Origin: Auanema rhodensis
Lineage: Eukaryota > Animalia > Nematoda
Assembly (NCBI GenBank): GCA_964057225.1
Contig: OZ059896.1
Coordinates: 14,694,001-14,758,000 of the forward strand
Length of the DNA: 64,000 nucleotides
Direction of reading: 5' to 3'
Below, in pieces: positions 23,825-51,828 of the stretch; the first letter of the stretch is position 1, and each line of letters begins with the position of its first letter. Made by a program: the position numbers and the translations under genes. Under the pieces are notes generated by a model that ran no database searches, was not told the DNA's origin, and saw nothing but the letters and a program-made list of their open reading frames with translations.

Positions 23825-23915
23825 TTATCAGCAAGAAAGTCCAAAACGGCAGATAACAGATGATTGACTTGGTAGAATAGCCTCAGGGCATGTGTCAATA
23901 TGAATTGATATATAA
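23825..23915 (+). promoter_or_regulatory. Vitellogenin promoter of copy 1: VPE2/GATA (TTATCAG), VPE1 (TGTCAAT), TATA
   Basis: TTATCAG (reverse CTGATAA) at 23825, TGTCAAT at 23893-23899, TATATAA at 23909-23915, ATG at 23964; VPE1/VPE2 are the established Caenorhabditis vit promoter elements. Confidence 0.75.
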
Positions 23916-23963
23916 GAAAGGAACTGAGCAGTAAAGGACAGTCTACGACTCTCATCAAGAACG

Positions 23964-26900
23964 ATGAAACTTCTCGTTCTCGTTGGCCTCTTGGGGCTAA
24001 CCCTGGCTAGTCTGCCATCTTTCGAGAGACGCGATATCAACGAAGTCGAATTCCGCTCCGAGCGTGAATACCGTTATCTCTTCGATGGACATCTCTCTAC
24101 TGCTTTACCTGTCTCTGAAAGCCAGAAGGCTATCACTCGTATCCAATCTCTTGTCAGCATCCAACCTGAATCTTCTGAATATTGGTTCCGCATGCAATTG
24201 AGAAATCTCCGCTGGGCTACTAGCCAGGAAGAGGTCGACACCCTCAGAATGCTCCCATTCGAGAGCATGGAGGAGGTCACCCTCGAGAAGGTAATATAAA
24301 CTTCCTCTTTTCTAATTCATCTTCCTTGTTTCAGGAGCAAGAACGTCTTCTCTCCCTCCCAATCCGCTTCAACTACAAGCACGGACTTGTCGGAGATGTC
24401 GAATTCGACGGAGAAGAGCTCGCCTGGTCCAAGAACATCAAGAAGTCCATCGTCAACATGCTCCAAGTATTCAGAATCTCTTCCTATAGTTCTCTAATCT
24501 TCTGAAATTCAGATCAACTACGTTAAGAAGGGAGTTGAGATGCGCGACCACATGATCGAGGAAGAAGACATCCGCAAGAACGACTACTTCACCGTTGTCG
24601 AGGTAAATGCCATCTGAGCTTAACCCAAAAACCTTTTGAACTTCAGCGTACCCTCGAAGGAGAGTGCGAGGTTGCCTACACCAGAATCGAAGAATCCAAG
24701 GAATTCGAACAATGGACCAAGTCCGTCAACTTCGACAAGTGCAACATCCGCCCAGAAGTCCGTTACGGACGCCGCTTCGTCGAGAAGTGCGAAGAATGCA
24801 AGAAGACCGTCGCTGACGAGAAGCTCTCTTCCACCGTCATGACCTTCAACCTCACTCACGGACGCACTGAGAACAAGTTCCTCATCCGCGATGTCGAACT
24901 CCGTTCCCAACACTTGTTCGCCCCAATCGCCGACAAGAACCAACTCCTCGTCTCCTACGTCTACAACAAGCTCAGCCTTGTCTACGCCGGAGAGGTCGAG
25001 AAGACCATCGAGAAGATCCAAGTTGAAGAGAAGGAAACCCTCATCTACAACTCTGAGATGGAAATTGCCGAGGAGATGTTCGCTATGACCGGAGAAGAGA
25101 AATACCTTCGCCACATCCCCATGTGGAGCAACAAGGTCGAGATGGTTAAGCAGATCTTCAACAAGATTGTCAAGGACCTCGAATCCGGAGTTGAACTCGA
25201 GACCACCAACCTCATCGCCCGCGTTGTCAAGGTTCTCCGTTTCTGCACTGAGCACGAGATCGAGAAGATCGAGCGCTTCTTGTACGACATGGAGAAGATG
25301 GAGGAGAAGACTGTTGAAAAGATGCGTCACATCTTCTTCGACTCCCTTGCTCTTTCTGGAACCAAGGTCACCATCCGCCACCTTCTTGAGAAGATGACCA
25401 AGAAGCAAATGAACCCCATCAAGGCTTCTCAACTCTTCAAGATGCTCGCCGAGATCCGTGTCCCATCCGAATACATCGCTGAAGACGTCTACCGTTTCTG
25501 CGAGTCTGATGTTGCCCACCGCAACCCAGTCCTCCGTCAATCCTGCTGGCTCACCTACGGATCCATTGTCTCTGGATTCTGCGGAGACAACGAGGAGAAG
25601 ATGGCCTACGAATTGAAGGAGAAGCTCTGCACTCGCTCCCTCAAGCAAAAGATCGTCGACCAACTCATCCGCAAGTTCAAGTCTGCTGAGACCCGCTACG
25701 AGAAGGTCCTCATGATCAAGACCCTCTCCAACGCTGCCATTGACGTTTCCGTCTACAGCCTCAACACCATCATCGCTGACAAGATGGAAGAGAAGACCGT
25801 CCGCCTCCAAGCCATCGAGGCTCTCCGCCGTCTCCGCACCGTCATGCCACGCAAGATCCAATATGTCCTCATGCCAGTCTACAAGGACCGCATGGAGCTC
25901 CCAGAGATCCGCATGTCCGCCCTCAACATCATCCTCATGACCAGACCAGAGGAAGCCATCCTCAGCCAAGTTGTTGAACAAGTCATCGTTGAGCGCAGCC
26001 GTCAAGTCCGCGTCTTCACCTACAACCTTCTCTCCACCCTCACCAAGTCCACCAACCCATGCGAGAAGGTCTTGGCCCTCCGTGTTTCCAAGGCTCTCCG
26101 CCTCATCCCAACTGAGCTTAAGCAAAACCTCTTGGACAGCCGCTTCAACAAGTGGACTCTCTACAACACCGAGTACATGACTGGAGCTACCTTCAACTGG
26201 GCTTCCATCTTCAGCTCTGAATCTGTCCTCCCCAAGGAAATCATGGCTTCCCTCGACTCCGTCTTCGGAGGAGAATGGAACAAGTACTTGGCTCAAATCG
26301 GACTCTACCAAAACAACATGGACGTCATCCTCAACAAGATGATCCGCAAGGTTGAGCAATCCGGACTTGAGACCCTCGTCGTCCGTGGAAAGAGATCCGC
26401 CACTTTCCGCCCAGTCGAGATCCTCCGCACCATCGCCGAGAAGTTGAACATCAAGCGCCGTGAGATGAGCAACGACGAACCAGAGGCTCTCCTCTACTTC
26501 CGTTACAAGGACATGGACTACGCTTTCCTTCCAATTGACATGGAAACCATCCCAGAGCTTTTCAAGAAGATCGCCCGCGAGGGAAGAATCGAGCTTGGAG
26601 ACATTGAGCGTGTTCTCTCCCACGGATTCCACTACACCCTTTCCGGAGCCGTCTTCGTTCACGAGACCATCCGCAAGATCCCAACTGCCCTCGGTATGCC
26701 AATCGTTCTTGGATCCAAGATGCCAACCCTTGCTACCGTCACTGGACACATCAAGGTTGAATTCGAGCCCAAGAGCTCTGACCGCTTCACCGGACTCCGC
26801 CTCCACCTTGTTGCCAAGCCAGAGGTTGCTTCCACTCACGTCATCAAGCTTGAAGCCCGCACTCCAGTTGTCTACTCCGGAGTCAAGCTTCTCCACGGAG

Positions 26901-29209
26901 CCAAGATCAACACCCCCATCGATCTTCAAATGTTCGTCAACTGGGAAGACAAGCTCACCCTCAAGACCGTCTTCAAGGTTCCAGAGACCAAGAGACACAT
27001 TGTCCACCTCATGACCCGCCCAGTCACCTACGTCGCCGTCTGGGACAAGGAAACCCGTCACTACCCCGAAACCATCGAGAAGACCATCTACCTCAAGGAT
27101 TCTCGCTACCCAGTTGAGACTATCGAGCGCGAATACTTCGAGAAGACCGGAATGAAGGTTTTGGTTTCCGGAAGCATCCGTCGCCCATTCTTCCCACTCT
27201 ACGCCACCGAGGAGCACAAGACTGTTCTTATCGGAGACAACCTCATCAACATCTGGTACGAGCCCATGACTGAGAAGGTCCGCGAGATCGTCTTCCACAT
27301 GGAAATGGACGTCTTCGAGCCAGTCAAGAGAATGGAAAGCCCAACTTTCGAAAACTTCTATGAGAAGAAGTCCATGAACAAGAGATACGAGACCGAGGAG
27401 GAAGACTTCGAGGTTGAGATGACCGACTACAAGACTGAGACTGAGAGCGAACGCCGCAACGTCTTCGCCAAGTACGTCAAGAACCTTGAGATCGTCAAGG
27501 CTTACAAGCACAGACTCTCCTTCAAGCTTGAGACTGTCGGAGATATCAAGAACAAGCTCGAGACTGAGGTCCGCGCCATCTGCGACGACAAGATCCGTTA
27601 CTGCCGTGTCCACTTTGAGGCCCGTCGCACTCCCTTCGGAGAGGAATCCCGCGAGTGGGAACTCAAGGCTTTGATCCAAACCCTCTACCCAGAGATGCCA
27701 ATGACCTTCAAGCAAATGTTCGATCAAATGCACCGTGAATTCATCGGAAACATGGAAATCCAATGGGGATCTGAGGAGAAGTACACCATGAACCTCAAGC
27801 TCCAAGGACAACAAAGCCGTGACCAAAAGATCTGGATGAAGAAGGTTGAGCGCGAGCAAAACGGACTTACCGAGACCGAGAAGCTCATCGAGGCCGCCAA
27901 GTTGAACCAATACAAGCTTGTTGCTGAGCACAAGATCAGCCCAATGCACAAGATGTACCTCCGCAACTTCCTTTCTCTCCTCAAGAGCTGGAACTTCATG
28001 AACACCCAAGTTGAGTTCACCAACAAGATGTACGAAGGACGCATGGAGGCTAAGCTCACCATCGAGCCAATCAGCCGCCGCTTCTGCGACATCGTCATTG
28101 AGACCCCAGAGCAACGTGTTCTCTTCCGCAACATCGTCGTTCCATTCGAGCTCCCAACCCTCAACATCCGCCGTCACTACGGATCTATCAACTCCATGAA
28201 GCACATCGCTGAGAAGATCGAGAAGGAGACCCGCGCTGAATGCGTCGTCAAGAGCAACGAGATCAAGACCTTCGATAACCTCTTCTACAGACTTCCAATG
28301 GTTCCATGCCAAACTGTTCTTGCCAAGGATTGCTCCTCTGAGATCCCCAAGTTCACCGTTCTTATGGAGAAGGTTGCCAAGAACACCGAAGAGAAGATCC
28401 TCACCATCCACCACGAGAAGAACAGCATCGAACTCGAATTGAAGAGAGAGAAGATGATCGTTAAGGTCAACGGAGAAATCATCAAGTCTGAGAAAGAGTT
28501 GGAGAACTTCGGAATCTTCATCATCACTGAGAAGCTCTACAAGATCGATCTTGAAGACGTTCTCGTCACCTTCGACGGAATCCACGCCAAGATTCAACTC
28601 TCTGCTCTTTACAAGAACAAGCAATGCGGAATCTGCGGACACTACGACAACGAGGTTTGTTCTAATTGCCCAGCATCACTATTGTGAATTCTATTTCATT
28701 CCAGGAAACTAACGAGTTCCGTCGTGCTGACAACATCGAGACCACCGACCTCATGGAGTTCCACAAGAGCTTCTTGCACAAGAACCAAAGATGCGAGATG
28801 GACGAGTACGAGCTCAACAAGGAGTCCAACTACAAGATTCTCCGTGAGGAGACCAGCAGCAGCGAGGAAGAGCTTATGAACGAGTACGAAGGTACAGCTT
28901 GTTTCTTATCCAATCTCAACCCAACTTTGTTTTTTTTCAGAGCCCGAGCTCCGCACTCGCGTTCTTGAGCGTGGACACCGCATGTGCTTCTCCGAGATGC
29001 CAGTTAAGAGCTGCCGCACTGAGAAGAAGGAATCCGAAACCACCTACAAGCAAATGACCTTCAGATGCCTTCGCAAGTCTCTCCCAGTTGTTGAGAAGAT
29101 GATGCGCGAACTCCGCAAGGAGAAGGTCTTGACCACCGACATGCTTGAGGAGATCGAAGAGACCTACGAGCACAAGATCCGCGTCCCAAAGATGTGCCTT
29201 GCTTATTAA
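23964..29209 (+). CDS. vit-6: Vitellogenin vit-6 type, copy 1 (6 exons: 23964-24290, 24335-24466, 24513-24602, 24647-28654, 28705-28891, 28941-29209; ~1670 aa)
   Basis: Signal peptide, VIT-6-like N-terminus (FRSEREYRYLFDGHLSTALPV...RMQLR...ATSQEE), ERTLEGECEV, RGKR candidate convertase site at 26384-26395, vWD motif CGICGHYD; exon lengths sum to 5013 nt in frame. Confidence 0.95.
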
Positions 29210-29362
29210 ACTAATTTTCTTATAGTTAATAATAAAAAATTTTATATTTTATATTTTCTTCACATAATTAGCATAAATACCATACAATTAGTACAATAAT
29301 TACGTAAAACACGTGAAAACCTCAGAGGGAATATCCAAAACCATCATTTCAGTCAAACATCG

Positions 29363-29470
29363 CGTGACCAATGAAGCTTTGCCGAGGTGCGATTATTGCT
29401 GGTTGAAAAACTTTTTCTAATTACCCGAAACATGGGTGATATACGCAATTTTTGAATGCCTGATAAGGCT
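29363..29470 (+). ncRNA. U4 snRNA-derived copy lacking the 5' ~20 nt (probable pseudogene), unit 1
   Basis: CGTGACCAATGAAGCTTTGCCGAGGTGCGATTATTGCTGGTTGAAAAACTTTT matches nematode U4 5' stem-loop/stem I; Sm site AATTTTTG; terminal hairpin GCCT-GATA-AGGC. Confidence 0.88.
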
Positions 29471-29581
29471 GATTAGCATATTATGGAAGATTGTTCCACG
29501 TGAAATGACGTCATTTTTCAAAACTAAACTAGAAGGAACGGTTGCACTCCGTACATATTCCGAAAAGAAAGAAAATCCTTC

Positions 29582-29700
29582 GCTTACGACCATACCACGT
29601 TGAAAGTACGCCATCCCGTCCGATCTGGCAAGTCAAGCAACGTTGGGCCCGGTTAGTACTTGGATCGGAGACGGCTTGGGAATCCCGGGTGCCGTAAGCT
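29582..29700 (+). rRNA. 5S rRNA gene, unit 1
   Basis: 119 nt GCTTACGACCATACC...TAGTACTTGGATCGGAGAC...GTAAGCT, near recalled C. elegans 5S; terminal stem pairs; followed by T-run Pol III terminator. Confidence 0.97.
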
Positions 29701-29793
29701 TTTCCCTTTTCTAATATTTTCAAATACGTTTATCATTATCGGTTACCTATATGGTATATGGTTAGTATTTCATAGTTGTTCATAATATTATTT

Positions 29794-30171
29794 TCGATGA
29801 TTTTGGGTTAGTGACGGTGTTTCCTTTTCCCAGACTGAGACATACGAGACTAGGCGGGTCAGGAGATGGACAATATGTCCCTTGGTCTCTGAATTCTTGA
29901 AGACGGTCTCCTCTAGGGAATGTTGATCTTGGCTCCGTGGAGAAGTTTGACTCCGTATCACACTACTGGAGTGCGAACTTCAAGCTTGATAACATGAGTG
30001 GAAGCAATTTCTGGTTTAGGAACATGGTGGAGTCCGGTGAAGCGGTCAGAGCTCTTGGCCTCGAATTCAACCATGATGTGTCCGGTGGCAGTAGCAAGAG
30101 TTGACATCTTAGATTCAAGAACGATTACCATACCGAGGGTTGTTGGGATCTTGCGGATGGTATTGTGAACG
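29794..30171 (-). pseudogene. Inverted, diverged internal vit-6 fragment, unit 1
   Basis: Reverse complement aligns by eye to vit-6 exon 4 (~26656-27078) with many substitutions and an ~45-bp internal deletion. Confidence 0.92.
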
Positions 30172-30349
30172 GTGATTTGAAATTAACATTGATAGTTGAT
30201 TAGCCATTAAGATCTTATCAAAGAAAAGAAAAAAAAACTGAGGAAATGCAATGAAATGGGAAAATGATTGGAAGCACATGTCAATATGAATTGATATATA
30301 AGAAAGGAACTGAACAGTAAAGGACAGTCTACGACTCTCATCAAGAACG

Positions 30350-33300
30350 ATGAAACTTCTCGTTCTCGTTGGCCTCTTGGGGCTAACCCTGGCTAGTCTG
30401 CCATCTTTCGAGAGACGCGATATCAACGAAGTCGAATTCCGCTCCGAGCGTGAATACCGTTATCTCTTCGATGGACATCTCTCTACTGCTTTACCTGTCT
30501 CTGAAAGCCAGAAGGCTATCACTCGTATCCAATCTCTTGTCAGCATCCAACCTGAATCTTCTGAATATTGGTTCCGCATGCAATTGAGAAATCTCCGCTG
30601 GGCTACTAGCCAGGAAGAGGTCGACACCCTCAGAATGCTCCCATTCGAGAGCATGGAGGAGGTCACCCTCGAGAAGGTAATATAAACTTCCTCTTTTCTA
30701 ATTCATCTTCCTTGTTTCAGGAGCAAGAACGTCTTCTCTCCCTCCCAATCCGCTTCAACTACAAGCACGGACTTGTCGGAGATGTCGAATTCGACGGAGA
30801 AGAGCTCGCCTGGTCCAAGAACATCAAGAAGTCCATCGTCAACATGCTCCAAGTATTCAGAATCTCTTCCTATAGTTTTCTAATCTTCTGAAATTCAGAT
30901 CAACTACGTTAAGAAGGGAGTTGAGATGCGCGACCACATGACCGAGGAAGAAGACATCCACAAGAACGACTACTTCACCGTTGTCGAGGTAAATGCCATC
31001 TGAGCTTAACCCAAAAACCTTTTGAACTTCAGCGTACCCTCGAAGGAGAGTGCGAGGTTGCCTACACCAGAATCGAAGAATCCAAGGAATTCGAACAATG
31101 GACCAAGTCCGTCAACTTCGACAAGTGCAACATCCGCCCAGAAGTCCGTTACGGACGCCGCTTCGTCGAGAAGTGCGAAGAATGCGAGAAGACCGTCGCT
31201 GACGAGAAGCTCTCTTCCACCGTCATGACCTTCAACCTCACTCACGGACGCACTGAGAACAAGTTCCTCATCCGCGATGTCGAACTCCGTTCCCAACACT
31301 TGTTCGCCCCAATCGCCGACAAGAACCAACTCCTCGTCTCCTACGTCTACAACAAGCTCAGCCTTGTCTACGCCGGAGAGGTCGAGAAGACCATCGAGAA
31401 GATCCAAGTTGAAGAGAAGGAAACCCTCATCTACAACTCTGAGATGGAAATTGCCGAGGAGATGTTCGCTATGACCGGAGAAGAGAAATACCTTCGCCAC
31501 ATCCCCATGTGGAGCAACAAGGTCGAGATGGTTAAGCAGATCTTCAACAAGATTGTCAAGGACCTCGAATCCGGAGTTGAACTCGAGACCACCAACCTCA
31601 TCGCCCGCGTTGTCAAGGTTCTCCGTTTCTGCACTGAGCACGAGATCGAGAAGATCGAGCGCTTCTTGTACGACATGGAGAAGATGGAGGAGAAGACTGT
31701 TGAAAAGATGCGTCACATCTTCTTCGACTCCCTTGCTCTTTCTGGAACCAAGGTCACCATCCGCCACCTTCTTGAGAAGATGACCAAGAAGCAAATGAAC
31801 CCCATCAAGGCTTCTCAACTCTTCAAGATGCTCGCCGAGATCCGTGTCCCATCCGAATACATCGCTGAAGACGTCTACCGTTTCTGCGAGTCTGATGTTG
31901 CCCACCGCAACCCAGTCCTCCGTCAATCCTGCTGGCTCACCTACGGATCCATTGTCTCTGGATTCTGCGGAGACAACGAGGAGAAGATGGCCTACGAATT
32001 GAAGGAGAAGCTCTGCACTCGCTCCCTCAAGCAAAAGATCGTCGACCAACTCATCCGCAAGTTCAAGTCTGCTGAGACCCGCTACGAGAAGGTCCTCATG
32101 ATCAAGACCCTCTCCAACGCTGCCATTGACGTTTCCGTCTACAGCCTCAACACCATCATCGCTGACAAGATGGAAGAGAAGACCGTCCGCCTCCAAGCCA
32201 TCGAGGCTCTCCGCCGTCTCCGCACCGTCATGCCACGCAAGATCCAATATGTCCTCATGCCAGTCTACAAGGACCGCATGGAGCTCCCAGAGATCCGCAT
32301 GTCCGCCCTCAACATCATCCTCATGACCAGACCAGAGGAAGCCATCCTCAGCCAAGTTGTTGAACAAGTCATCGTTGAGCGCAGCCGTCAAGTCCGCGTC
32401 TTCACCTACAACCTTCTCTCCACCCTCACCAAGTCCACCAACCCATGCGAGAAGGTCTTGGCCCTCCGTGTTTCCAAGGCTCTCCGCCTCATCCCAACTG
32501 AGCTTAAGCAAAACCTCTTGGACAGCCGCTTCAACAAGTGGACTCTCTACAACACCGAGTACATGACTGGAGCTACCTTCAACTGGGCTTCCATCTTCAG
32601 CTCTGAATCTGTCCTCCCCAAGGAAATCATGGCTTCCCTCGACTCCGTCTTCGGAGGAGAATGGAACAAGTACTTGGCTCAAATCGGACTCTACCAAAAC
32701 AACATGGACGTCATCCTCAACAAGATGATCCGCAAGGTTGAGCAATCCGGACTTGAGACCCTCGTCGTCCGTGGAAAGAGATCCGCCACTTTCCGCCCAG
32801 TCGAGATCCTCCGCACCATCGCCGAGAAGTTGAACATCAAGCGCCGTGAGATGAGCAACGACGAACCAGAGGCTCTCCTCTACTTCCGTTACAAGGACAT
32901 GGACTACGCTTTCCTTCCAATTGACATGGAAACCATCCCAGAGCTTTTCAAGAAGATCGCCCGCGAGGGAAGAATCGAGCTTGGAGACATTGAGCGTGTT
33001 CTCTCCCACGGATTCCACTACACCCTTTCCGGAGCCGTCTTCGTTCACGAGACCATCCGCAAGATCCCAACTGCCCTCGGTATGCCAATCGTTCTTGGAT
33101 CCAAGATGCCAACCCTTGCTACCGTCACTGGACACATCAAGGTTGAATTCGAGCCCAAGAGCTCTGACCGCTTCACCGGACTCCGCCTCCACCTTGTTGC
33201 CAAGCCAGAGGTTGCTTCCACTCACGTCATCAAGCTTGAAGCCCGCACTCCAGTTGTCTACTCCGGAGTCAAGCTTCTCCACGGAGCCAAGATCAACACC

Positions 33301-35595
33301 CCCATCGATCTTCAAATGTTCGTCAACTGGGAAGACAAGCTCACCCTCAAGACCGTCTTCAAGGTTCCAGAGACCAAGAGACACATTGTCCACCTCATGA
33401 CCCGCCCAGTCACCTACGTCGCCGTCTGGGACAAGGAAACCCGTCACTACCCCGAAACCATCGAGAAGACCATCTACCTCAAGGATTCTCGCTACCCAGT
33501 TGAGACTATCGAGCGCGAATACTTCGAGAAGACCGGAATGAAGGTTTTGGTTTCCGGAAGCATCCGTCGCCCATTCTTCCCACTCTACGCCACCGAGGAG
33601 CACAAGACTGTTCTTATCGGAGACAACCTCATCAACATCTGGTACGAGCCCATGACTGAGAAGGTCCGCGAGATCGTCTTCCACATGGAAATGGACGTCT
33701 TCGAGCCAGTCAAGAGAATGGAAAGCCCAACTTTCGAAAACTTCTATGAGAAGAAGTCCATGAACAAGAGATACGAGACCGAGGAGGAAGACTTCGAGGT
33801 TGAGATGACCGACTACAAGACTGAGACTGAGAGCGAACGCCGCAACGTCTTCGCCAAGTACGTCAAGAACCTTGAGATCGTCAAGGCTTACAAGCACAGA
33901 CTCTCCTTCAAGCTTGAGACTGTCGGAGATATCAAGAACAAGCTCGAGACTGAGGTCCGCGCCATCTGCGACGACAAGATCCGTTACTGCCGTGTCCACT
34001 TTGAGGCCCGTCGCACTCCCTTCGGAGAGGAATCCCGCGAGTGGGAACTCAAGGCTTTGATCCAAACCCTCTACCCAGAGATGCCAATGACCTTCAAGCA
34101 AATGTTCGATCAAATGCACCGTGAATTCATCGGAAACATGGAAATCCAATGGGGATCTGAGGAGAAGTACACCATGAACCTCAAGCTCCAAGGACAACAA
34201 AGCCGTGACCAAAAGATCTGGATGAAGAAGGTTGAGCGCGAGCAAAACGGACTTACCGAGACCGAGAAGCTCATCGAGGCCGCCAAGTTGAACCAATACA
34301 AGCTTGTTGCTGAGCACAAGATCAGCCCAATGCACAAGATGTACCTCCGCAACTTCCTTTCTCTCCTCAAGAGCTGGAACTTCATGAACACCCAAGTTGA
34401 GTTCACCAACAAGATGTACGAAGGACGCATGGAGGCTAAGCTCACCATCGAGCCAATCAGCCGCCGCTTCTGCGACATCGTCATTGAGACCCCAGAGCAA
34501 CGTGTTCTCTTCCGCAACATCGTCGTTCCATTCGAGCTCCCAACCCTCAACATCCGCCGTCACTACGGATCTATCAACTCCATGAAGCACATCGCTGAGA
34601 AGATCGAGAAGGAGACCCGCGCTGAATGCGTCGTCAAGAGCAACGAGATCAAGACCTTCGATAACCTCTTCTACAGACTTCCAATGGTTCCATGCCAAAC
34701 TGTTCTTGCCAAGGATTGCTCCTCTGAGATCCCCAAGTTCACCGTTCTTATGGAGAAGGTTGCCAAGAACACCGAAGAGAAGATCCTCACCATCCACCAC
34801 GAGAAGAACAGCATCGAACTCGAATTGAAGAGAGAGAAGATGATCGTTAAGGTCAACGGAGAAATCATCAAGTCTGAGGAAGAGTTGGAGAACTTCGGAA
34901 TCTTCATCATCACTGAGAAGCTCTACAAGATCGATCTTGAAGACGTTCTCGTCACCTTCGACGGAATCCACGCCAAGATTCAACTCTCTGCTCTTTACAA
35001 GAACAAGCAATGCGGAATCTGCGGACACTACGACAACGAGGTTTGTTCTAATTGCCCAGCATCACTATTGTGAATTCTATTTCATTCCAGGAAACTAACG
35101 AGTTCCGTCGTGCTGACAACATCGAGACCACCGACCTCATGGAGTTCCACAAGAGCTTCTTGCACAAGAACCAAAGATGCGAGATGGACGAGTACGAGCT
35201 CAACAAGGAGTCCAACTACAAGATTCTCCGTGAGGAGACCAGCAGCAGCGAGGAAGAGCTTATGAACGAGTACGAAGGTACAGCTTGTTTCTTATCCAAT
35301 CTCAACCCAACTTTGTTTTTTTTCAGAGCCCGAGCTCCGCACTCGCGTTCTTGAGCGTGGACACCGCATGTGCTTCTCCGAGATGCCAGTTAAGAGCTGC
35401 CGCACTGAGAAGAAGGAATCCGAAACCACCTACAAGCAAATGACCTTCAGATGCCTTCGCAAGTCTCTCCCAGTTGTTGAGAAGATGATGCGCGAACTCC
35501 GCAAGGAGAAGGTCTTGACCACCGACATGCTTGAGGAGATCGAAGAGACCTACGAGCACAAGATCCGCGTCCCAAAGATGTGCCTTGCTTATTAA
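30350..35595 (+). CDS. vit-6: Vitellogenin vit-6 type, copy 2
   Basis: Copy 1 shifted by 6386 bp; a handful of SNPs. Confidence 0.95.
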
Positions 35596-35748
35596 ACTAA
35601 TTTTCTTATAGTTAATAATAAAAAATTTTATATTTTATATTTTCTTCACATAATTAGCATAAATACCATACAATTAGTACAATAATTACGTAAAACACGT
35701 GAAAACCTCAGAGGGAATATCCAAAACCATCATTTCAGTCAAACATCG

Positions 35749-35856
35749 CGTGACCAATGAAGCTTTGCCGAGGTGCGATTATTGCTGGTTGAAAAACTTT
35801 TTCTAATTACCCGAAACATGGGTGATATACGCAATTTTTGAATGCCTGATAAGGCT
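35749..35856 (+). ncRNA. U4 snRNA-derived truncated copy, unit 2
   Basis: Same sequence as 29363-29470. Confidence 0.88.
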
Positions 35857-35967
35857 GATTAGCATATTATGGAAGATTGTTCCACGTGAAATGACGTCAT
35901 TTTTCAAAACTAAACTAGAAGGAACGGTTGCACTCCGTACATATTCCGAAAAGAAAGAAAATCCTTC

Positions 35968-36086
35968 GCTTACGACCATACCACGTTGAAAGTACGCCAT
36001 CCCGTCCGATCTGGCAAGTCAAGCAACGTTGGGCCCGGTTAGTACTTGGATCGGAGACGGCTTGGGAATCCCGGGTGCCGTAAGCT
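35968..36086 (+). rRNA. 5S rRNA gene, unit 2
   Basis: Same sequence as 29582-29700. Confidence 0.97.
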
Positions 36087-39700: not shown

Positions 39701-41981
39701 AATGTTCGTCAACTGGGAAGACAAGCTCACCCTCAAGACCGTCTTCAAGGTTCCAGAGACCAAGAGACACATTGTCCACCTCATGACCCGCCCAGTCACC
39801 TACGTCGCCGTCTGGGACAAGGAAACCCGTCACTACCCCGAAACCATCGAGAAGACCATCTACCTCAAGGATTCTCGCTACCCAGTTGAGACTATCGAGC
39901 GCGAATACTTCGAGAAGACCGGAATGAAGGTTTTGGTTTCCGGAAGCATCCGTCGCCCATTCTTCCCACTCTACGCCACCGAGGAGCACAAGACTGTTCT
40001 TATCGGAGACAACCTCATCAACATCTGGTACGAGCCCATGACTGAGAAGGTCCGCGAGATCGTCTTCCACATGGAAATGGACGTCTTCGAGCCAGTCAAG
40101 AGAATGGAAAGCCCAACTTTCGAAAACTTCTATGAGAAGAAGTCCATGAACAAGAGATACGAGACCGAGGAGGAAGACTTCGAGGTTGAGATGACCGACT
40201 ACAAGACTGAGACTGAGAGCGAACGCCGCAACGTCTTCGCCAAGTACGTCAAGAACCTTGAGATCGTCAAGGCTTACAAGCACAGACTCTCCTTCAAGCT
40301 TGAGACTGTCGGAGATATCAAGAACAAGCTCGAGACTGAGGTCCGCGCCATCTGCGACGACAAGATCCGTTACTGCCGTGTCCACTTTGAGGCCCGTCGC
40401 ACTCCCTTCGGAGAGGAATCCCGCGAGTGGGAACTCAAGGCTTTGATCCAAACCCTCTACCCAGAGATGCCAATGACCTTCAAGCAAATGTTCGATCAAA
40501 TGCACCGTGAATTCATCGGAAACATGGAAATCCAATGGGGATCTGAGGAGAAGTACACCATGAACCTCAAGCTCCAAGGACAACAAAGCCGTGACCAAAA
40601 GATCTGGATGAAGAAGGTTGAGCGCGAGCAAAACGGACTTACCGAGACCGAGAAGCTCATCGAGGCCGCCAAGTTGAACCAATACAAGCTTGTTGCTGAG
40701 CACAAGATCAGCCCAATGCACAAGATGTACCTCCGCAACTTCCTTTCTCTCCTCAAGAGCTGGAACTTCATGAACACCCAAGTTGAGTTCACCAACAAGA
40801 TGTACGAAGGACGCATGGAGGCTAAGCTCACCATCGAGCCAATCAGCCGCCGCTTCTGCGACATCGTCATTGAGACCCCAGAGCAACGTGTTCTCTTCCG
40901 CAACATCGTCGTTCCATTCGAGCTCCCAACCCTCAACATCCGCCGTCACTACGGATCTATCAACTCCATGAAGCACATCGCTGAGAAGATCGAGAAGGAG
41001 ACCCGCGCTGAATGCGTCGTCAAGAGCAACGAGATCAAGACCTTCGATAACCTCTTCTACAGACTTCCAATGGTTCCATGCCAAACTGTTCTTGCCAAGG
41101 ATTGCTCCTCTGAGATCCCCAAGTTCACCGTTCTTATGGAGAAGGTTGCCAAGAACACCGAAGAGAAGATCCTCACCATCCACCACGAGAAGAACAGCAT
41201 CGAACTCGAATTGAAGAGAGAGAAGATGATCGTTAAGGTCAACGGAGAAATCATCAAGTCTGAGGAAGAGTTGGAGAACTTCGGAATCTTCATCATCACT
41301 GAGAAGCTCTACAAGATCGATCTTGAAGACGTTCTCGTCACCTTCGACGGAATCCACGCCAAGATTCAACTCTCTGCTCTTTACAAGAACAAGCAATGCG
41401 GAATCTGCGGACACTACGACAACGAGGTTTGTTCTAATTGCCCAGCATCACTATTGTGAATTCTATTTCATTCCAGGAAACTAACGAGTTCCGTCGTGCT
41501 GACAACATCGAGACCACCGACCTCATGGAGTTCCACAAGAGCTTCTTGCACAAGAACCAAAGATGCGAGATGGACGAGTACGAGCTCAACAAGGAGTCCA
41601 ACTACAAGATTCTCCGTGAGGAGACCAGCAGCAGCGAGGAAGAGCTTATGAACGAGTACGAAGGTACAGCTTGTTTCTTATCCAATCTCAACCCAACTTT
41701 GTTTTTTTTCAGAGCCCGAGCTCCGCACTCGCGTTCTTGAGCGTGGACACCGCATGTGCTTCTCCGAGATGCCAGTTAAGAGCTGCCGCACTGAGAAGAA
41801 GGAATCCGAAACCACCTACAAGCAAATGACCTTCAGATGCCTTCGCAAGTCTCTCCCAGTTGTTGAGAAGATGATGCGCGAACTCCGCAAGGAGAAGGTC
41901 TTGACCACCGACATGCTTGAGGAGATCGAAGAGACCTACGAGCACAAGATCCGCGTCCCAAAGATGTGCCTTGCTTATTAA
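36736..41981 (+). CDS. vit-6: Vitellogenin vit-6 type, copy 3
   Basis: Copy 2 shifted by 6386 bp; no differences from copy 2 noticed. Confidence 0.95.
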
Positions 41982-42134
41982 ACTAATTTTCTTATAGTTA
42001 ATAATAAAAAATTTTATATTTTATATTTTCTTCACATAATTAGCATAAATACCATACAATTAGTACAATAATTACGTAAAACACGTGAAAACCTCAGAGG
42101 GAATATCCAAAACCATCATTTCAGTCAAACATCG

Positions 42135-42242
42135 CGTGACCAATGAAGCTTTGCCGAGGTGCGATTATTGCTGGTTGAAAAACTTTTTCTAATTACCCGA
42201 AACATGGGTGATATACGCAATTTTTGAATGCCTGATAAGGCT
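42135..42242 (+). ncRNA. U4 snRNA-derived truncated copy, unit 3
   Basis: Same sequence as 29363-29470; the 5S gene that should follow is cut off at its first base (42354). Confidence 0.88.
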
Positions 42243-42370
42243 GATTAGCATATTATGGAAGATTGTTCCACGTGAAATGACGTCATTTTTCAAAACTAAA
42301 CTAGAAGGAACGGTTGCACTCCGTACATATTCCGAAAAGAAAGAAAATCCTTCGTGACCTATGAGGCTTC

Positions 42371-44879
42371 TATTTTTTCCGGAAAAACGGTTTATTCCGG
42401 GGGGGGGGGGCCTATCCACAAGATTGTTCACAAAAAAGTTCAGGCTGTGTTCACGATGTGACCGGTGATTCCCCGTTTTTCTCCTCGATTATGAAATATA
42501 TTCAATTACAAATATACTGAACTTGGGTATTGAAATCTGTAGAATCTGAATATCCAACTTAGATTTGGCTAGGTTCTCTCTAATTTCCGGAAAAACGGTT
42601 TATACCAAGCCCAACCACGAGAATGTTCACAAAAAAGTTCAGGCTGTGTTCACGATGTGACCGGTGATTCCCCGTTTTTCTCCTCGATTATGAAATATAT
42701 TCAATTACAAATATACTGAACTTGGGTATTGAAATCTGTAGAATCTGAATATCCAACTTAGATTTGGCTAGGTTCTCTCTAATTTCCGGAAAAACGGTTT
42801 ATACCAAGCCCAACCACGAGAATGTTCACAAAAAAGTTCAGGCTGTGTTCACGATGTGACCGGTGATTCCCCGTTTTTCTCCTCGATTATGAAATATATC
42901 CAATTACAAATATACTGAACTTGGGTGTTCAAACCTGTAAAATCTGAATATCCGACTTATATTTGACTAAGTTCTCTCCATTTTCCGGAAATACGGTTTA
43001 TACCAAGCTCAACCACGAGAATGTTCACAAAAAAGTTCAGGCTGTGTTCACGATGTGACCGGTGATTCCCCGTTTTTCTCCTCGATTATGAAATATATTC
43101 AATTACAAATATACTGAACTTGGGTATTGAAATCTGTAGAATCTGAATATCCAACTTAGATTTGGCTAGGTTCTCTCTAATTTCCGGAAAAACGGTTTAT
43201 ACCAAGCCCAACCACGAGAATGTTCACAAAAAAGTTCAGGCTGTGTTCACGATGTGACCGGTGATTCCCCGTTTTTCTCCTCGATTATGAAATATATTCA
43301 ATTACAAATATACTGAACTTGGGTATTGAAATCTGTAGAATCTGAATATCCAACTTAGATTTGGCTAGGTTCTCTCTAATTTCCGGAAAAACGGTTTATA
43401 CCAAGCCCAACCACGAGAATGTTCACAAAAAAGTTCAGGCTGTGTTCACGATGTGACCGGTGATTCCCCGTTTTTCTCCTCGATTATGAAATATATTCAA
43501 TTACAAATATACTGAACTTGGGTGTTCAAACCTGTAAAATCTGAATATCCGACTTATATTTGACTAAGTTCTCTCCATTTTCCGGAAATACGGTTTATAC
43601 CAAGCTCAACCACGAGAATGTTCACAAAAAAGTTCAGGCTGTGTTCACGATGTGACCGGTGATTCCCCGTTTTTCTCCTCGATTATGAAATATATTCAAT
43701 TACAAATATACTGAACTTGGGTATTGAAATCTGTAGAATCTGAATATCCAACTTAGATTTGGCTAGGTTCTCTCTAATTTCCGGAAAAACGGTTTATACC
43801 AAGCCCAACCACGAGAATGTTCACAAAAAAGTTCAGGCTGTGTTCACGATGTGACCGGTGATTCCCCGTTTTTCTCCTCGATTATGAAATATATTCAATT
43901 ACAAATATACTGAACTTGGGTATTGAAATCTGTAGAATCTGAATATCCAACTTAGATTAGGCTAGGTTCTCTCTATTTTCCGGAAAAACGGTTTATACCA
44001 AGCCCAACCACGAGAATGTTCACAAAAAAGTTCAGGCTGTGTTCACGATGTGACCGGTGATTCCCCGTTTTTCTCCTCGATTATGAAATATATTCAATTA
44101 CAAATATACTGAACTTGGGTGTTCAAACCTGTAAAATCTGAATATCCGACTTATATTTGACTAAGTTCTCTCCATTTTCCGGAAATACGGTTTATACCAA
44201 GCTCAACCACGAGAATGTTCACAAAAAAGTTCAGGCTGTGTTCACGATGTGACCGGTGATTCCCCGTTTTTCTCCTCGATTATGAAATATATTCAATTAC
44301 AAATATACTGAACTTGGGTATTGAAATCTGTAGAATCTGAATATCCAACTTAGATTTGGCTAGGTTCTCTCTAATTTCCGGAAAAACGGTTTATACCAAG
44401 CCCAACCACGAGAATGTTCACAAAAAAGTTCAGGCTGTGTTCACGATGTGACCGGTGATTCCCCGTTTTTCTCCTCGATTATGAAATATATTCAATTACA
44501 AATATACTGAACTTGGGTATTGAAATCTGTAGAATCTGAATATCCAACTTAGATTTGGCTAGGTTCTCTCTAATTTCCGGAAAAACGGTTTATACCAAGC
44601 CCAACCACGAGAATGTTCACAAAAAAGTTCAGGCTGTGTTCACGATGTGACCGGTGATTCCCCGTTTTTCTCCTCGATTATGAAATATATTCAATTACAA
44701 ATATACTGAACTTGGGTGTTCAAACCTGTAAAATCTGAATATCCGACTTATATTTGACTAAGTTCTCTCCATTTTCCGGAAATACGGTTTATACCAACCT
44801 CAACCACGAGAATGTTCACAAAAAAGTTCAGGCTGTGTACACGATGTGACCGGTGATTCCCCGTTTTTCTCCTCGATTA
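42371..44879. repeat. 199-bp satellite, ~12.5 copies, two variants arranged (A-A-B)x4
   Basis: AAAAAAGTTCAGGCTGTG recurs at 42432, 42631, 42830 ... 44820; variant B (GGGTGTTCAAACCTGTAAAATC) in copies 3, 6, 9, 12, variant A (GGGTATTGAAATCTGTAGAATC) elsewhere. Confidence 0.97.
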
Positions 44880-44985: not shown

Positions 44986-45104
44986 AGCTTACGGCACCCG
45001 GGATTCCCAATCCGTCTCCGATCCAAGTACTAACCGGGCCCAACGTTGCTTGACTTGCCAGATCGGACGGGATGGCGTACTTTCAACGTGGTATGGTCGT
45101 AATC
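44986..45104 (-). rRNA. 5S rRNA gene (variant: C2A and a second C>A)
   Basis: Reverse complement reads GATTACGACCATACC...GGAGACGGATTGGGAATC...GTAAGCT. Confidence 0.93.
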
Positions 45105-45215: not shown

Positions 45216-45323
45216 AGCCTTATCAGGCATTCAAAAATTGCGTATATCACCCATGTTTCGGGTAATTAGAAAAAGTTTTTCAACCAGCAATAATCGCACC
45301 TCGGCAAAGCTTCATTGGTCACG
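45216..45323 (-). ncRNA. U4 snRNA-derived truncated copy
   Basis: Reverse complement of 29363-29470. Confidence 0.88.
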
Positions 45324-45476
45324 CGATGTTTGACTGAAATGATGGTTTTGGATATTCCCTCTGAGGTTTTCACGTGTTTTACGTAATTATTGTACTAATT
45401 GTATGGTATTTATGCTAATTATGTGAAGAAAATATAAAATATAAAATTTTTTATTATTAACTATAAGAAAATTAGT

Positions 45477-48400
45477 TTAATAAGCAAGGCACATCTTTGG
45501 GACGCGGATCTTGTGCTCGTAGGTCTCTTCGATCTCCTCAAGCATGTCGGTGGTCAAGACCTTCTCCTTGCGGAGTTCGCGCATCATCTTCTCAACAACT
45601 GGGAGAGACTTGCGAAGGCATCTGAAGGTCATTTGCTTGTAGGTGGTTTCGAATTCCTTCTTCTCAGTGCGGCAGCTCTTAACTGGCATCTCGGAGAAGC
45701 ACATGCGGTGTCCACGCTCAAGAACGCGAGTGCGGAGCTCGGGCTCTGAAAAAAAAACAAAGTTGGGTTGAGATTGGATAAGAAACAAGCTGTACCTTCG
45801 TACTCGTTCATAAGCTCTTCCTCGCTGCTGCTGGTCTCCTCACGGAGAATCTTGTAGTTGGACTCCTTGTTGAGCTCGTACTCGTCCATCTCGCATCTTT
45901 GGTTCTTGTGCAAGAAGCTCTTGTGGAACTCCATGAGGTCGGTGGTCTCGATGTTGTCAGCACGACGGAACTCGTTAGTTTCCTGGAATGAAATAGAATT
46001 CACAATAGTGATGCTGGGCAATTAGAACAAACCTCGTTGTCGTAGTGTCCGCAGATTCCGCATTGCTTGTTCTTGTAAAGAGCAGAGAGTTGAATCTTGG
46101 CGTGGATTCCGTCGAAGGTGACGAGAACGTCTTCAAGATCGATCTTGTAGAGCTTCTCAGTGATGATGAAGATTCCGAAGTTCTCCAACTCTTCCTCAGA
46201 CTTGATGATTTCTCCGTTGACCTTAACGATCATCTTCTCTCTCTTCAATTCGAGTTCGATGCTGTTCTTCTCGTGGTGGATGGTGAGGATCTTCTCTTCG
46301 GTGTTCTTGGCAACCTTCTCCATAAGAACGGTGAACTTGGGGATCTCAGAGGAGCAATCCTTGGCAAGAACAGTTTGGCATGGAACCATTGGAAGTCTGT
46401 AGAAGAGGTTATCGAAGGTCTTGATCTCGTTGCTCTTGACGACGCATTCAGCGCGGGTCTCCTTCTCGATCTTCTCAGCGATGTGCTTCATGGAGTTGAT
46501 AGATCCGTAGTGACGGCGGATGTTGAGGGTTGGGAGCTCGAATGGAACGACGATGTTGCGGAAGAGAACACGTTGCTCTGGGGTCTCAATGACGATGTCG
46601 CAGAAGCGGCGGCTGATTGGCTCGATGGTGAGCTTAGCCTCCATGCGTCCTTCGTACATCTTGTTGGTGAACTCAACTTGGGTGTTCATGAAGTTCCAGC
46701 TCTTGAGGAGAGAAAGGAAGTTGCGGAGGTACATCTTGTGCATTGGGCTGATCTTGTGCTCAGCAACAAGCTTGTATTGGTTCAACTTGGCGGCCTCGAT
46801 GAGCTTCTCGGTCTCGGTAAGTCCGTTTTGCTCGCGCTCAACCTTCTTCATCCAGATCTTTTGGTCACGGCTTTGTTGTCCTTGGAGCTTGAGGTTCATG
46901 GTGTACTTCTCCTCAGATCCCCATTGGATTTCCATGTTTCCGATGAATTCACGGTGCATTTGATCGAACATTTGCTTGAAGGTCATTGGCATCTCTGGGT
47001 AGAGGGTTTGGATCAAAGCCTTGAGTTCCCACTCGCGGGATTCCTCTCCGAAGGGAGTGCGACGGGCCTCAAAGTGGACACGGCAGTAACGGATCTTGTC
47101 GTCGCAGATGGCGCGGACCTCAGTCTCGAGCTTGTTCTTGATATCTCCGACAGTCTCAAGCTTGAAGGAGAGTCTGTGCTTGTAAGCCTTGACGATCTCA
47201 AGGTTCTTGACGTACTTGGCGAAGACGTTGCGGCGTTCGCTCTCAGTCTCAGTCTTGTAGTCGGTCATCTCAACCTCGAAGTCTTCCTCCTCGGTCTCGT
47301 ATCTCTTGTTCATGGACTTCTTCTCATAGAAGTTTTCGAAAGTTGGGCTTTCCATTCTCTTGACTGGCTCGAAGACGTCCATTTCCATGTGGAAGACGAT
47401 CTCGCGGACCTTCTCAGTCATGGGCTCGTACCAGATGTTGATGAGGTTGTCTCCGATAAGAACAGTCTTGTGCTCCTCGGTGGCGTAGAGTGGGAAGAAT
47501 GGGCGACGGATGCTTCCGGAAACCAAAACCTTCATTCCGGTCTTCTCGAAGTATTCGCGCTCGATAGTCTCAACTGGGTAGCGAGAATCCTTGAGGTAGA
47601 TGGTCTTCTCGATGGTTTCGGGGTAGTGACGGGTTTCCTTGTCCCAGACGGCGACGTAGGTGACTGGGCGGGTCATGAGGTGGACAATGTGTCTCTTGGT
47701 CTCTGGAACCTTGAAGACGGTCTTGAGGGTGAGCTTGTCTTCCCAGTTGACGAACATTTGAAGATCGATGGGGGTGTTGATCTTGGCTCCGTGGAGAAGC
47801 TTGACTCCGGAGTAGACAACTGGAGTGCGGGCTTCAAGCTTGATGACGTGAGTGGAAGCAACCTCTGGCTTGGCAACAAGGTGGAGGCGGAGTCCGGTGA
47901 AGCGGTCAGAGCTCTTGGGCTCGAATTCAACCTTGATGTGTCCAGTGACGGTAGCAAGGGTTGGCATCTTGGATCCAAGAACGATTGGCATACCGAGGGC
48001 AGTTGGGATCTTGCGGATGGTCTCGTGAACGAAGACGGCTCCGGAAAGGGTGTAGTGGAATCCGTGGGAGAGAACACGCTCAATGTCTCCAAGCTCGATT
48101 CTTCCCTCGCGGGCGATCTTCTTGAAAAGCTCTGGGATGGTTTCCATGTCAATTGGAAGGAAAGCGTAGTCCATGTCCTTGTAACGGAAGTAGAGGAGAG
48201 CCTCTGGTTCGTCGTTGCTCATCTCACGGCGCTTGATGTTCAACTTCTCGGCGATGGTGCGGAGGATCTCGACTGGGCGGAAAGTGGCGGATCTCTTTCC
48301 ACGGACGACGAGGGTCTCAAGTCCGGATTGCTCAACCTTGCGGATCATCTTGTTGAGGATGACGTCCATGTTGTTTTGGTAGAGTCCGATTTGAGCCAAG

Positions 48401-50723
48401 TACTTGTTCCATTCTCCTCCGAAGACGGAGTCGAGGGAAGCCATGATTTCCTTGGGGAGGACAGATTCAGAGCTGAAGATGGAAGCCCAGTTGAAGGTAG
48501 CTCCAGTCATGTACTCGGTGTTGTAGAGAGTCCACTTGTTGAAGCGGCTGTCCAAGAGGTTTTGCTTAAGCTCAGTTGGGATGAGGCGGAGAGCCTTGGA
48601 AACACGGAGGGCCAAGACCTTCTCGCATGGGTTGGTGGACTTGGTGAGGGTGGAGAGAAGGTTGTAGGTGAAGACGCGGACTTGACGGCTGCGCTCAACG
48701 ATGACTTGTTCAACAACTTGGCTGAGGATGGCTTCCTCTGGTCTGGTCATGAGGATGATGTTGAGGGCGGACATGCGGATCTCTGGGAGCTCCATGCGGT
48801 CCTTGTAGACTGGCATGAGGACATATTGGATCTTGCGTGGCATGACGGTGCGGAGACGGCGGAGAGCCTCGATGGCTTGGAGGCGGACGGTCTTCTCTTC
48901 CATCTTGTCAGCGATGATGGTGTTGAGGCTGTAGACGGAAACGTCAATGGCAGCGTTGGAGAGGGTCTTGATCATGAGGACCTTCTCGTAGCGGGTCTCG
49001 GCAGACTTGAACTTGCGGATGAGTTGGTCGACGATCTTTTGCTTGAGGGAGCGAGTGCAGAGCTTCTCCTTCAATTCGTAGGCCATCTTCTCCTCGTTGT
49101 CTCCGCAGAATCCAGAGACAATGGATCCGTAGGTGAGCCAGCAGGATTGACGGAGGACTGGGTTGCGGTGGGCAACATCAGACTCGCAGAAACGGTAGAC
49201 GTCTTCAGCGATGTATTCGGATGGGACACGGATCTCGGCGAGCATCTTGAAGAGTTGAGAAGCCTTGATGGGGTTCATTTGCTTCTTGGTCATCTTCTCA
49301 AGAAGGTGGCGGATGGTGACCTTGGTTCCAGAAAGAGCAAGGGAGTCGAAGAAGATGTGACGCATCTTTTCAACAGTCTTCTCCTCCATCTTCTCCATGT
49401 CGTACAAGAAGCGCTCGATCTTCTCGATCTCGTGCTCAGTGCAGAAACGGAGAACCTTGACAACGCGGGCGATGAGGTTGGTGGTCTCGAGTTCAACTCC
49501 GGATTCGAGGTCCTTGACAATCTTGTTGAAGATCTGCTTAACCATCTCGACCTTGTTGCTCCACATGGGGATGTGGCGAAGGTATTTCTCTTCTCCGGTC
49601 ATAGCGAACATCTCCTCGGCAATTTCCATCTCAGAGTTGTAGATGAGGGTTTCCTTCTCTTCAACTTGGATCTTCTCGATGGTCTTCTCGACCTCTCCGG
49701 CGTAGACAAGGCTGAGCTTGTTGTAGACGTAGGAGACGAGGAGTTGGTTCTTGTCGGCGATTGGGGCGAACAAGTGTTGGGAACGGAGTTCGACATCGCG
49801 GATGAGGAACTTGTTCTCAGTGCGTCCGTGAGTGAGGTTGAAGGTCATGACGGTGGAAGAGAGCTTCTCGTCAGCGACGGTCTTCTTGCATTCTTCGCAC
49901 TTCTCGACGAAGCGGCGTCCGTAACGGACTTCTGGGCGGATGTTGCACTTGTCGAAGTTGACGGACTTGGTCCATTGTTCGAATTCCTTGGATTCTTCGA
50001 TTCTGGTGTAGGCAACCTCGCACTCTCCTTCGAGGGTACGCTGAAGTTCAAAAGGTTTTTGGGTTAAGCTCAGATGGCATTTACCTCGACAACGGTGAAG
50101 TAGTCGTTCTTGCGGATGTCTTCTTCCTCGATCATGTGGTCGCGCATCTCAACTCCCTTCTTAACGTAGTTGATCTGAATTTCAGAAGATTAGAGAACTA
50201 TAGGAAGAGATTCTGAATACTTGGAGCATGTTGACGATGGACTTCTTGATGTTCTTGGACCAGGCGAGCTCTTCTCCGTCGAATTCGACATCTCCGACAA
50301 GTCCGTGCTTGTAGTTGAAGCGGATTGGGAGGGAGAGAAGACGTTCTTGCTCCTGAAACAAGGAAGATGAATTAGAAAAGAGGAAGTTTATATTACCTTC
50401 TCGAGGGTGACCTCCTCCATGCTCTCGAATGGGAGCATTCTGAGGGTGTCGACCTCTTCCTGGCTAGTAGCCCAGCGGAGATTTCTCAATTGCATGCGGA
50501 ACCAATATTCAGAAGATTCAGGTTGGATGCTGACAAGAGATTGGATACGAGTGATAGCCTTCTGGCTTTCAGAGACAGGTAAAGCAGTAGAGAGATGTCC
50601 ATCGAAGAGATAACGGTATTCACGCTCGGAGCGGAATTCGACTTCGTTGATATCGCGTCTCTCGAAAGATGGCAGACTAGCCAGGGTTAGCCCCAAGAGG
50701 CCAACGAGAACGAGAAGTTTCAT
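45477..50723 (-). CDS. vit-6: Vitellogenin vit-6 type, copy 4 (inverted)
   Basis: Same 6-exon gene on the minus strand; private changes include KKESETT>KKEFETT and one synonymous GCT>GCC. Confidence 0.95.
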
Positions 50724-50901: not shown

Positions 50902-51279
50902 CGTTCACAATACCATCCGCAAGATCCCAACAACCCTCGGTATGGTAATCGTTCTTGAATCTAAGATGTCAACTCTTGCTACTGCCACCGGACACATCAT
51001 GGTTGAATTCGAGGCCAAGAGCTCTGACCGCTTCACCGGACTCCACCATGTTCCTAAACCAGAAATTGCTTCCACTCATGTTATCAAGCTTGAAGTTCGC
51101 ACTCCAGTAGTGTGATACGGAGTCAAACTTCTCCACGGAGCCAAGATCAACATTCCCTAGAGGAGACCGTCTTCAAGAATTCAGAGACCAAGGGACATAT
51201 TGTCCATCTCCTGACCCGCCTAGTCTCGTATGTCTCAGTCTGGGAAAAGGAAACACCGTCACTAACCCAAAATCATCGA
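50902..51279 (+). pseudogene. Diverged vit-6 fragment, opposite orientation to copy 4
   Basis: Reverse complement of 29794-30171. Confidence 0.92.
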
Positions 51280-51372
51280 AAATAATATTATGAACAACTA
51301 TGAAATACTAACCATATACCATATAGGTAACCGATAATGATAAACGTATTTGAAAATATTAGAAAAGGGAAA

Positions 51373-51491
51373 AGCTTACGGCACCCGGGATTCCCAAGCC
51401 GTCTCCGATCCAAGTACTAACCGGGCCCAACGTTGCTTGACTTGCCAGATCGGACGGGATGGCGTATTTTCAACGTGGTATGGTCGTAAGC
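51373..51491 (-). rRNA. 5S rRNA gene (one G>A variant)
   Basis: Reverse complement reads GCTTACGACCATACCACGTTGAAAATACGCC...GTAAGCT. Confidence 0.95.
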
Positions 51492-51602
51492 GAAGGATTT
51501 TCTTTCTTTTCGGAATATGTACGGAGTGCAACCGTTCCTTCTAGTTTAGTTTTGAAAAATGACGTCATTTCACGTGGAACAATCTTCCATAATATGCTAA
51601 TC

Positions 51603-51828
51603 AGCCTTATCAGGCATTCAAAAATTGCGTATATCACCCATGTTTCGGGTAATTAGAAAAAGTTTTTCAACCAGCAATAATCGCACCTCGGCAAAGCTTC
51701 ATTGGTCACGCGATGTTTGACTGAAATGATGGTTTTGGATATTCCCTCTGAGGTTTTCACGTGTTTTACGTAATTATTGTCACCTCGGCAAAGCCTCATT
51801 GGTCACGTTATCTCTACTGCGCCGAGCT
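51603..51828 (-). pseudogene. Split U4 snRNA gene: 5' part 51828-51781, 70-bp insert 51780-51711, 3' part 51710-51603
   Basis: Minus strand AGCTCGGCGCAGTAGAGATAACGTGACCAATGAGGCTTTGCCGAGGTG is a U4 5' end; CGTGACCAATGA(G/A)GCTTTGCCGAGGTG occurs on both sides of the insert. Confidence 0.85.

Follow-up and report, generated by a model that had tools for sequence, protein, structure and literature searches.

The 64-kb window analysed here, 64,000 nucleotides of the Auanema rhodensis genome (assembly GCA_964057225.1, contig OZ059896.1, positions 14,694,001 to 14,758,000), contains a cluster of vit-6-type vitellogenin genes interleaved with 5S ribosomal RNA genes and with sequences related to the U4 small nuclear RNA (snRNA). 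A reading of the window made from its letters alone, referred to below as the original prediction, took the cluster for a 5S ribosomal DNA (rDNA) repeat unit with a yolk gene inside it, and named as its alternative a duplication of vit-6 in which 5S and U4 were passive passengers. In the following sections we describe the architecture of the locus, examine each of its components, and use contig depth, variation among the copies and comparison with related nematodes to weigh these and other accounts of its origin.

Results

Architecture of the vit-6 locus

A repeat search of the window identified a 6386-bp unit that occurs three times in direct orientation and, on the far side of a block of satellite DNA, an inverted segment of ~6.9 kb (6901 bp) that is the reverse complement of positions 29293-36192. 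The components of each copy are listed in Table 1. In total, the locus holds four intact vit-6 genes, four 5S genes, five U4-like pieces and three antisense vit fragments. At its left edge direct unit 1 meets unique flanking sequence. Direct unit 3 ends at the first nucleotide of its expected 5S gene and is followed by a degenerate copy of the satellite, and the inverted segment terminates 106 nt after a 5S gene. A unit of 6386 bp with an intact 5.2-kb vit-6 gene is what had originally been described. The copies are not arranged as four tandem units; the locus consists of three direct units, the third truncated and lacking 5S, plus one inverted copy.

Table 1. Features of the vit-6 locus and its flanks (positions are those of the 64-kb window; CDS, coding sequence).
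Feature	Position	Strand	Content
Direct unit 1	23888-30273	+	promoter; vit-6 CDS 23964-29209; 3′ flank; U4-like 29343-29469; 5S 29582-29700; antisense vit fragment 29791-30171
vit-6 exons, unit 1	23964-24290, 24335-24466, 24513-24602, 24647-28654, 28705-28891, 28941-29209	+	introns from RNA-like contigs
Direct unit 2	30274-36659	+	vit-6 CDS 30350-35595; U4-like 35729-35855; 5S 35968-36086; antisense fragment ~36177-36557
Direct unit 3, truncated	36660-42355	+	vit-6 CDS 36736-41981; U4-like 42115-42241; without 5S and without antisense fragment
199-bp satellite	42356-44879		centre, between direct and inverted arms; degenerate first copy; G12 run ~42399-42410
Inverted segment	44880-51780	-	5S 44986-45104; U4-like 45217-45343; vit-6 CDS 45477-50723; antisense fragment ~50902-51282; 5S 51373-51491; U4-like 51604-51730; joint 51711-51780
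5S genes	29582-29700, 35968-36086	+	Rfam RF00001
5S genes	44986-45104, 51373-51491	-	Rfam RF00001
U4-like pieces	starts 29343, 35729, 42115	+	Rfam RF00015
U4-like pieces	starts 45217, 51604	-	Rfam RF00015
Native U4 snRNA 5′ fragment	51781-51828	-	nt 1-48; good GCGCAG stem II region; directly adjoins amplicon end 51780
Carboxypeptidase D-like gene (Peptidase_M14)	52504-53536	-	right flank
GH1/klotho-like beta-glucosidase gene	21506-23281	+	ITENG and WSLLDNFEW exons

The satellite at the centre of the locus comprises ~12.4 copies of a 199-bp sequence between 42416 and 44879. Its derivation from 5S was considered and rejected, as local alignment of the 199-bp dimer to 5S with its context gave z ≤1.4 against shuffled sequences. 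A run of 12 G residues at 42399-42410, where truncated unit 3 meets the satellite, may have arisen as an error of long-read assembly or as a scar left by repair.

The vit-6 gene and the antisense relic

In unit 1, vit-6 extends from an ATG at 23964 to a stop codon at 29207-29209 (5246 bp, six exons) and contains an intact open reading frame of 1670 aa. Its large exon matches the Pfam vitellogenin domains Vitellogenin_N (E-value 2.8e-77), open beta-sheet (7.9e-53) and VWD (1.9e-21). In a protein collection without proteins of the source species, the best match was a Heterorhabditis protein (52% identity), and identities fell to 47% for both Oscheius VIT6 and Caenorhabditis auriculariae, 41% for C. 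elegans vit-6 and ~34% for other vit types. Judged from its sequence, the gene is a vit-6-type vitellogenin, nearest to the vit-6 proteins of Rhabditina. Five short GT..AG introns are spliced out in contigs of a public sequencing run (X11) that is only guessed to be RNA; on that reading, the intact vit-6 gene is spliced and expressed. The same run yielded a second, lower-depth RNA-like contig (5000 nt, depth 27) that shares only short stretches with vit-6, at 24718 and 28653; it is probably the transcript of a paralogous vitellogenin gene.

The antisense fragment at 29791-30171 lies between the 5S gene and the next promoter and matches vit residues 851-985 with 77% DNA identity. It carries one stop and one frameshift and is an old vit relic that long predates the units, whose sequences differ by ~0.1%. 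An inverted vit fragment had been predicted as a component of the unit; it is present in antisense orientation as proposed, in only three copies.

5S genes are complete but the least uniform part of the unit

Each of the four 5S copies covers positions 1-120 of the Rfam model, scores 101.9-108.2 bits against a gathering score of 38, and is followed by TTTT, which agrees with the earlier description of a full 119-nt 5S gene with a terminator. We then asked how variation is distributed among the copies. Across the unit, 12 sites are variable, and three of these fall within the 119 nt of 5S, a rate ~17 times that of the rest of the 6386-nt unit (binomial P ~1e-3, in a post hoc test). The copy at 44986-45104 has two changes: C2>A disrupts a base pair of helix I, C94>A falls on a conserved C, and both are probably damaging. 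The single change in the copy at 51373-51491, G25>A, looks neutral. Thus the counts and the near identity claimed for the four vit-6 and four 5S copies hold with 12 variable sites overall, but one of the 5S genes does not conform, as it bears the two probably damaging substitutions.

5S is the least homogenised part of the unit, which is the opposite of homogenisation driven by 5S. The 5S copies are drifting. Possible sources of the excess change are relaxed selection, mutation associated with RNA polymerase III (Pol III) and exchange with 5S genes at other loci; errors introduced by polishing are a fourth. Three of the four copies look intact, with a T-run terminator, and some may still be transcribed. 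With respect to position, the direct array breaks between nucleotides 1 and 2 of 5S, and the 5S gene that faces this break across the satellite is mutated at nucleotide 2.

The amplicon boundary lies within a U4 gene

A U4-derived sequence had been reported ~150 bp past the vit-6 stop codon. It is present, with the internal U4-like pieces scoring 54.1 bits against an Rfam gathering score of 46, but the first piece begins 134 nt past the stop and there are five pieces in all. In the internal pieces alignment over model nucleotides 1-21 is poor, the GCGCAG segment of stem II is missing and the central stems are mispaired; they have neither the intact 5′ region nor the overall fold of a U4 snRNA. 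The 48 nt at the 5′ end of a true U4 survive only immediately beyond the right end of the amplicon, at 51781-51828. Nucleotides 22-48 of this native fragment (27 nt) are repeated within the amplicon U4-like piece. The amplicon pieces open with 70 nt that elsewhere continue the vit 3′ flank, and then enter U4 at nucleotide 22. The end of the amplicon thus falls inside a native U4 gene. The pieces within the amplicon are dead and represent breakpoint debris rather than part of an organised unit.

Flanking genes and related nematodes

At the vit-6 locus of Angiostrongylus cantonensis, the upstream neighbour is a homologue of the carboxypeptidase D-like gene in the right flank, and its orientation relative to vit-6 matches that seen here for the minus-strand copy. 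From this synteny between the right flank and the A. cantonensis locus, we place the right-hand, minus-strand vit-6 at the ancestral site and regard the plus-strand copies as derived. The vit-6 orthologue was also located in four other relatives, namely a Logan nematode contig (L001), C. auriculariae, Nippostrongylus brasiliensis and Pristionchus pacificus. Neither 5S nor U4 was found within 10 kb of vit-6 in any of the five, where contig ends allowed; upstream sequence in L001 extends for only ~1.1 kb. Conservation of the vit-6/5S linkage in relatives, put forward originally as a check on the rDNA interpretation, is not borne out in this set.

Other features of the flanks were recorded. The sequence that separates the native U4 fragment from the carboxypeptidase gene includes a 90-nt AG/CT microsatellite (52176-52265). 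On the left, the possibility that the breakpoint truncates the GH1/klotho-like gene was rejected: the gene is apparently complete, with both exons present, and ends ~500-600 nt before the array. Further out, at 15956-19256, two pieces of open reading frame match the same part of a haem peroxidase domain (profile ~245-342), which suggests that the left flank holds two tandem haem peroxidase genes at ~15.9-19.3 kb.

Copy number and identity among the copies

Support from independent data was taken from Logan assembled contigs of four public runs from four studies, compared with the window over positions 23301-29300. Depths are per-contig k-mer means, not copy numbers, and run types were guessed, so that the ratios serve as an indication only. 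In run X1, a 5531-nt intron-containing vit contig that starts at 23893 has a depth of 341.1, compared with 43.1 for an 11.2-kb flank contig (~8x). The corresponding values were ~144 and 16 in X4 (~9x) and ~13 and 4.1 in X9 (~3x). These ratios suggest about 3-9 unit-like copies; the window holds four 5S copies. The contigs of X1 also break at the assembled left boundary (23888), with the flank contig ending at 23846 and other breaks at 23889-23893. These observations argue against an artefact of one or two copies, the outcome that had been named in advance as fatal to the prediction, and support a true amplification of vit-6. The spread of the ratios suggests that copy number differs between samples.

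Alignment of the copies places their divergence at no more than ~0.1%, with no difference at all between units 2 and 3 over their shared length. Divergence this low implies very recent events or ongoing conversion. Recombination among the copies was considered and is not needed to account for the variants, which fit a simple tree, ((u2,u3), u1, inv). The combination of variants in the majority contig of X1 matches none of the four assembled copies, which points to strain differences or to copies unrepresented in the assembly.

Several additional contigs bear on the wider population of vit-6 copies. In X1, short contigs spanning 23817-23889 and 23860-23922 occur at ~2x and ~2.5x flank depth, respectively, and a 272-nt contig joins two inverted copies of the promoter, as would fit another pair of vit-6 genes arranged head to head elsewhere. 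In run X9 (organism D), GATC is inserted after position 29175, in vit-6 codon 1659 of 1670, which would frameshift the last residues, and several X9 contigs depart from the vit sequence into unrelated sequence, for example with a different upstream context at 23948. The X9 contigs suggest that this sample holds structurally different vit-6 copies. As a source of independent assemblies, metagenome contigs of the Joint Genome Institute (JGI) were scanned with a 66-nt 5S core and with the fragment/promoter junction, and no match was obtained.

Discussion

The locus is probably a young segmental amplification of vit-6 at its ancestral site, with 5S and U4 carried as passengers. The properties of a recent segmental amplification are present: copies that are nearly identical, junctions with unique flank, raised depth, and a breakpoint that cuts a neighbouring gene. 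Every copy contains vit-6 and one is without 5S. Because unit 3 ends at nucleotide 1 of its 5S gene, the common denominator of the copies is vit-6 rather than 5S. The alternative offered with the original prediction, passive carriage of 5S and U4 by a vit-6 duplication, is the one that best fits the data.

A history can be proposed on this basis. The ancestral order on the minus strand would have been a carboxypeptidase D gene, a U4 snRNA gene, a solitary 5S gene, a decayed vit relic in head-to-head orientation, and vit-6. Duplication breakpoints inside U4 and ~150 bp beyond the vit-6 stop codon would have generated the 6.4-kb unit; further copies of it, both tandem and inverted, would then have arisen around the 199-bp satellite. 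In this sequence of events vit-6 is probably the selected or driving cargo, the plausible benefit being dosage of a bulk yolk protein, and 5S and the 5′-truncated U4 would merely have lain inside the copied interval.

Four observations sit less comfortably with this reading. A complete, high-scoring 5S gene with a terminator lies just downstream of vit-6 in three copies out of four, the truncated unit being the exception. The right boundary, in which U4 nucleotides 1-48 are followed by 70 nt and then by U4 from nucleotide 22 to its end, needs more than one simple tandem duplication. The evidence from depth rests on per-contig k-mer means in runs of guessed type and not on copy numbers. Finally, two of approximately five breakpoints lie at a 5S gene or within 106 nt of one, so 5S may not have been wholly passive.

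This last point leads to a second explanation, in which the 5S genes were instigators of the rearrangement: sites bound by Pol III would stall replication forks or provide dispersed homology, and thereby seed breakpoints and inverted duplication. The break in the direct array at the start of 5S, the end of the inverted segment a short distance after another 5S, and the change at nucleotide 2 in the copy that faces the break are all in keeping with it. We nonetheless consider it unlikely. The breakpoints at 23888, at 51780 and at the joint between the vit 3′ flank and U4 are not at 5S, the events are too few for statistics, and transcription of 5S at this locus is a prediction from sequence. 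A broader form of the idea is that in this nematode 5S genes have moved out of a single array and are dispersed beside protein-coding genes, and that their Pol III-bound sites act as hot spots of recombination or fork stalling, or as chromatin boundaries, which shape the copy number of adjacent, heavily used genes transcribed by RNA polymerase II (Pol II). The vit-6 amplicon, broken between nucleotides 1 and 2 of 5S and apparently variable in copy number, would then be a live example; we hold this generalisation to be unlikely as well.

It is very unlikely that a functional 5S rDNA-type repeat took in vit-6, such that yolk-gene dosage was amplified and homogenised by rDNA-like concerted evolution and the supplies of 5S and yolk became coupled. 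This proposal, the central claim of the original prediction, draws on the complete 5S gene and T-run that follow vit-6 in direct units 1 and 2 and also in the inverted copy, on the near identity of the copies, and on the SL1 spliced-leader sequence, which was correctly predicted to be absent and was not found anywhere in the 64-kb window. A tandem array of 5S rDNA is composed of head-to-tail units that each carry 5S, whereas here only four 5S copies occur in the window, unit 3 has none, and one arm is inverted across a satellite. Such an array would keep 5S no less uniform than the spacer; at this locus it is the most variable segment, with 3 of the 12 variable sites and one damaged copy, and the idea that vit-6 hitch-hikes on rDNA-like concerted evolution is not supported. 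Nor is the claim that vit-6 resides inside a 5S rDNA unit, since the unit boundary cuts a U4 gene and leaves dead fragments, one unit is without 5S, and the five relatives are without the linkage.

An assembly artefact, in which the assembler multiplied or wrongly joined one or two real vit-6 copies, would account for the 100% identity of units 2 and 3, the G12 run and satellite at the centre, and the X1 majority variants that match none of the four copies, but this is scarcely credible given a vit contig whose k-mer depth is 3-9x that of the flank in each of three runs, all from separate studies, X1 contigs that break at the assembled boundary, and an assembly that under-counts copies, if anything.

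Under the preferred explanation, an amplification of vit-6 with passenger genes, the locus offers a very young and probably copy-number-variable yolk-gene amplification in which selection for dosage in yolk provisioning could be studied, as could the way direct and inverted duplications form. The claim of a Pol II gene residing in a 5S rDNA array and homogenised by it is removed. That the passenger 5S genes change faster provides a small, testable hint of Pol III-associated mutation or of exchange with other 5S loci.

How does this locus compare with known systems? Replication template switching or breakage-fusion events give rise to complex segmental amplifications with direct and inverted duplications and with breakpoints inside neighbouring genes. 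The vit-6 locus resembles these in its direct and inverted copies, its central satellite, the U4 gene truncated at a breakpoint and its very low divergence; it differs in the 27-nt overlap and 70-nt joint at the right boundary.

A second comparison is with vitellogenin families. In C. elegans, vit-6 is a single-copy gene. That species has six vit genes (review PMC6736625). Its vit-1 to vit-5, like the mosquito Vtg genes (PMC2875236), exemplify vitellogenin families that recent tandem or inverted duplication has expanded locally, with concerted evolution. As in these cases, a highly expressed yolk gene is present in several near-identical local copies, with dosage as the plausible benefit. The locus described here is distinguished by involving a vit-6-type gene, by the ~99.9% identity of its copies, and by a repeated block that also holds Pol III-type genes.

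A third comparison is with linked 5S repeats. 5S is linked to SL1 in C. elegans (PMC1657053), and its partners elsewhere include histone, snRNA and spliced-leader genes, while dispersed 5S genes are also known (PMC10946416, citing Drouin and de Sa 1995). No paper connecting 5S with vitellogenin genes turned up in a literature search. Shared with these cases are the position of a 5S gene beside a gene of snRNA type (U4) and its joint repetition with a gene that is not ribosomal. In the linked repeats, however, the 5S unit is itself the repeat and its partner is a small abundant RNA or histone gene, whereas here a 5.2-kb Pol II gene defines the repeat, the copies are few, and 5S is not homogenised. 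Taken together, these comparisons place the vit-6 locus among gene amplicons that carry passengers, a known kind of which it is a new case, and do not make it a new kind of rDNA unit.

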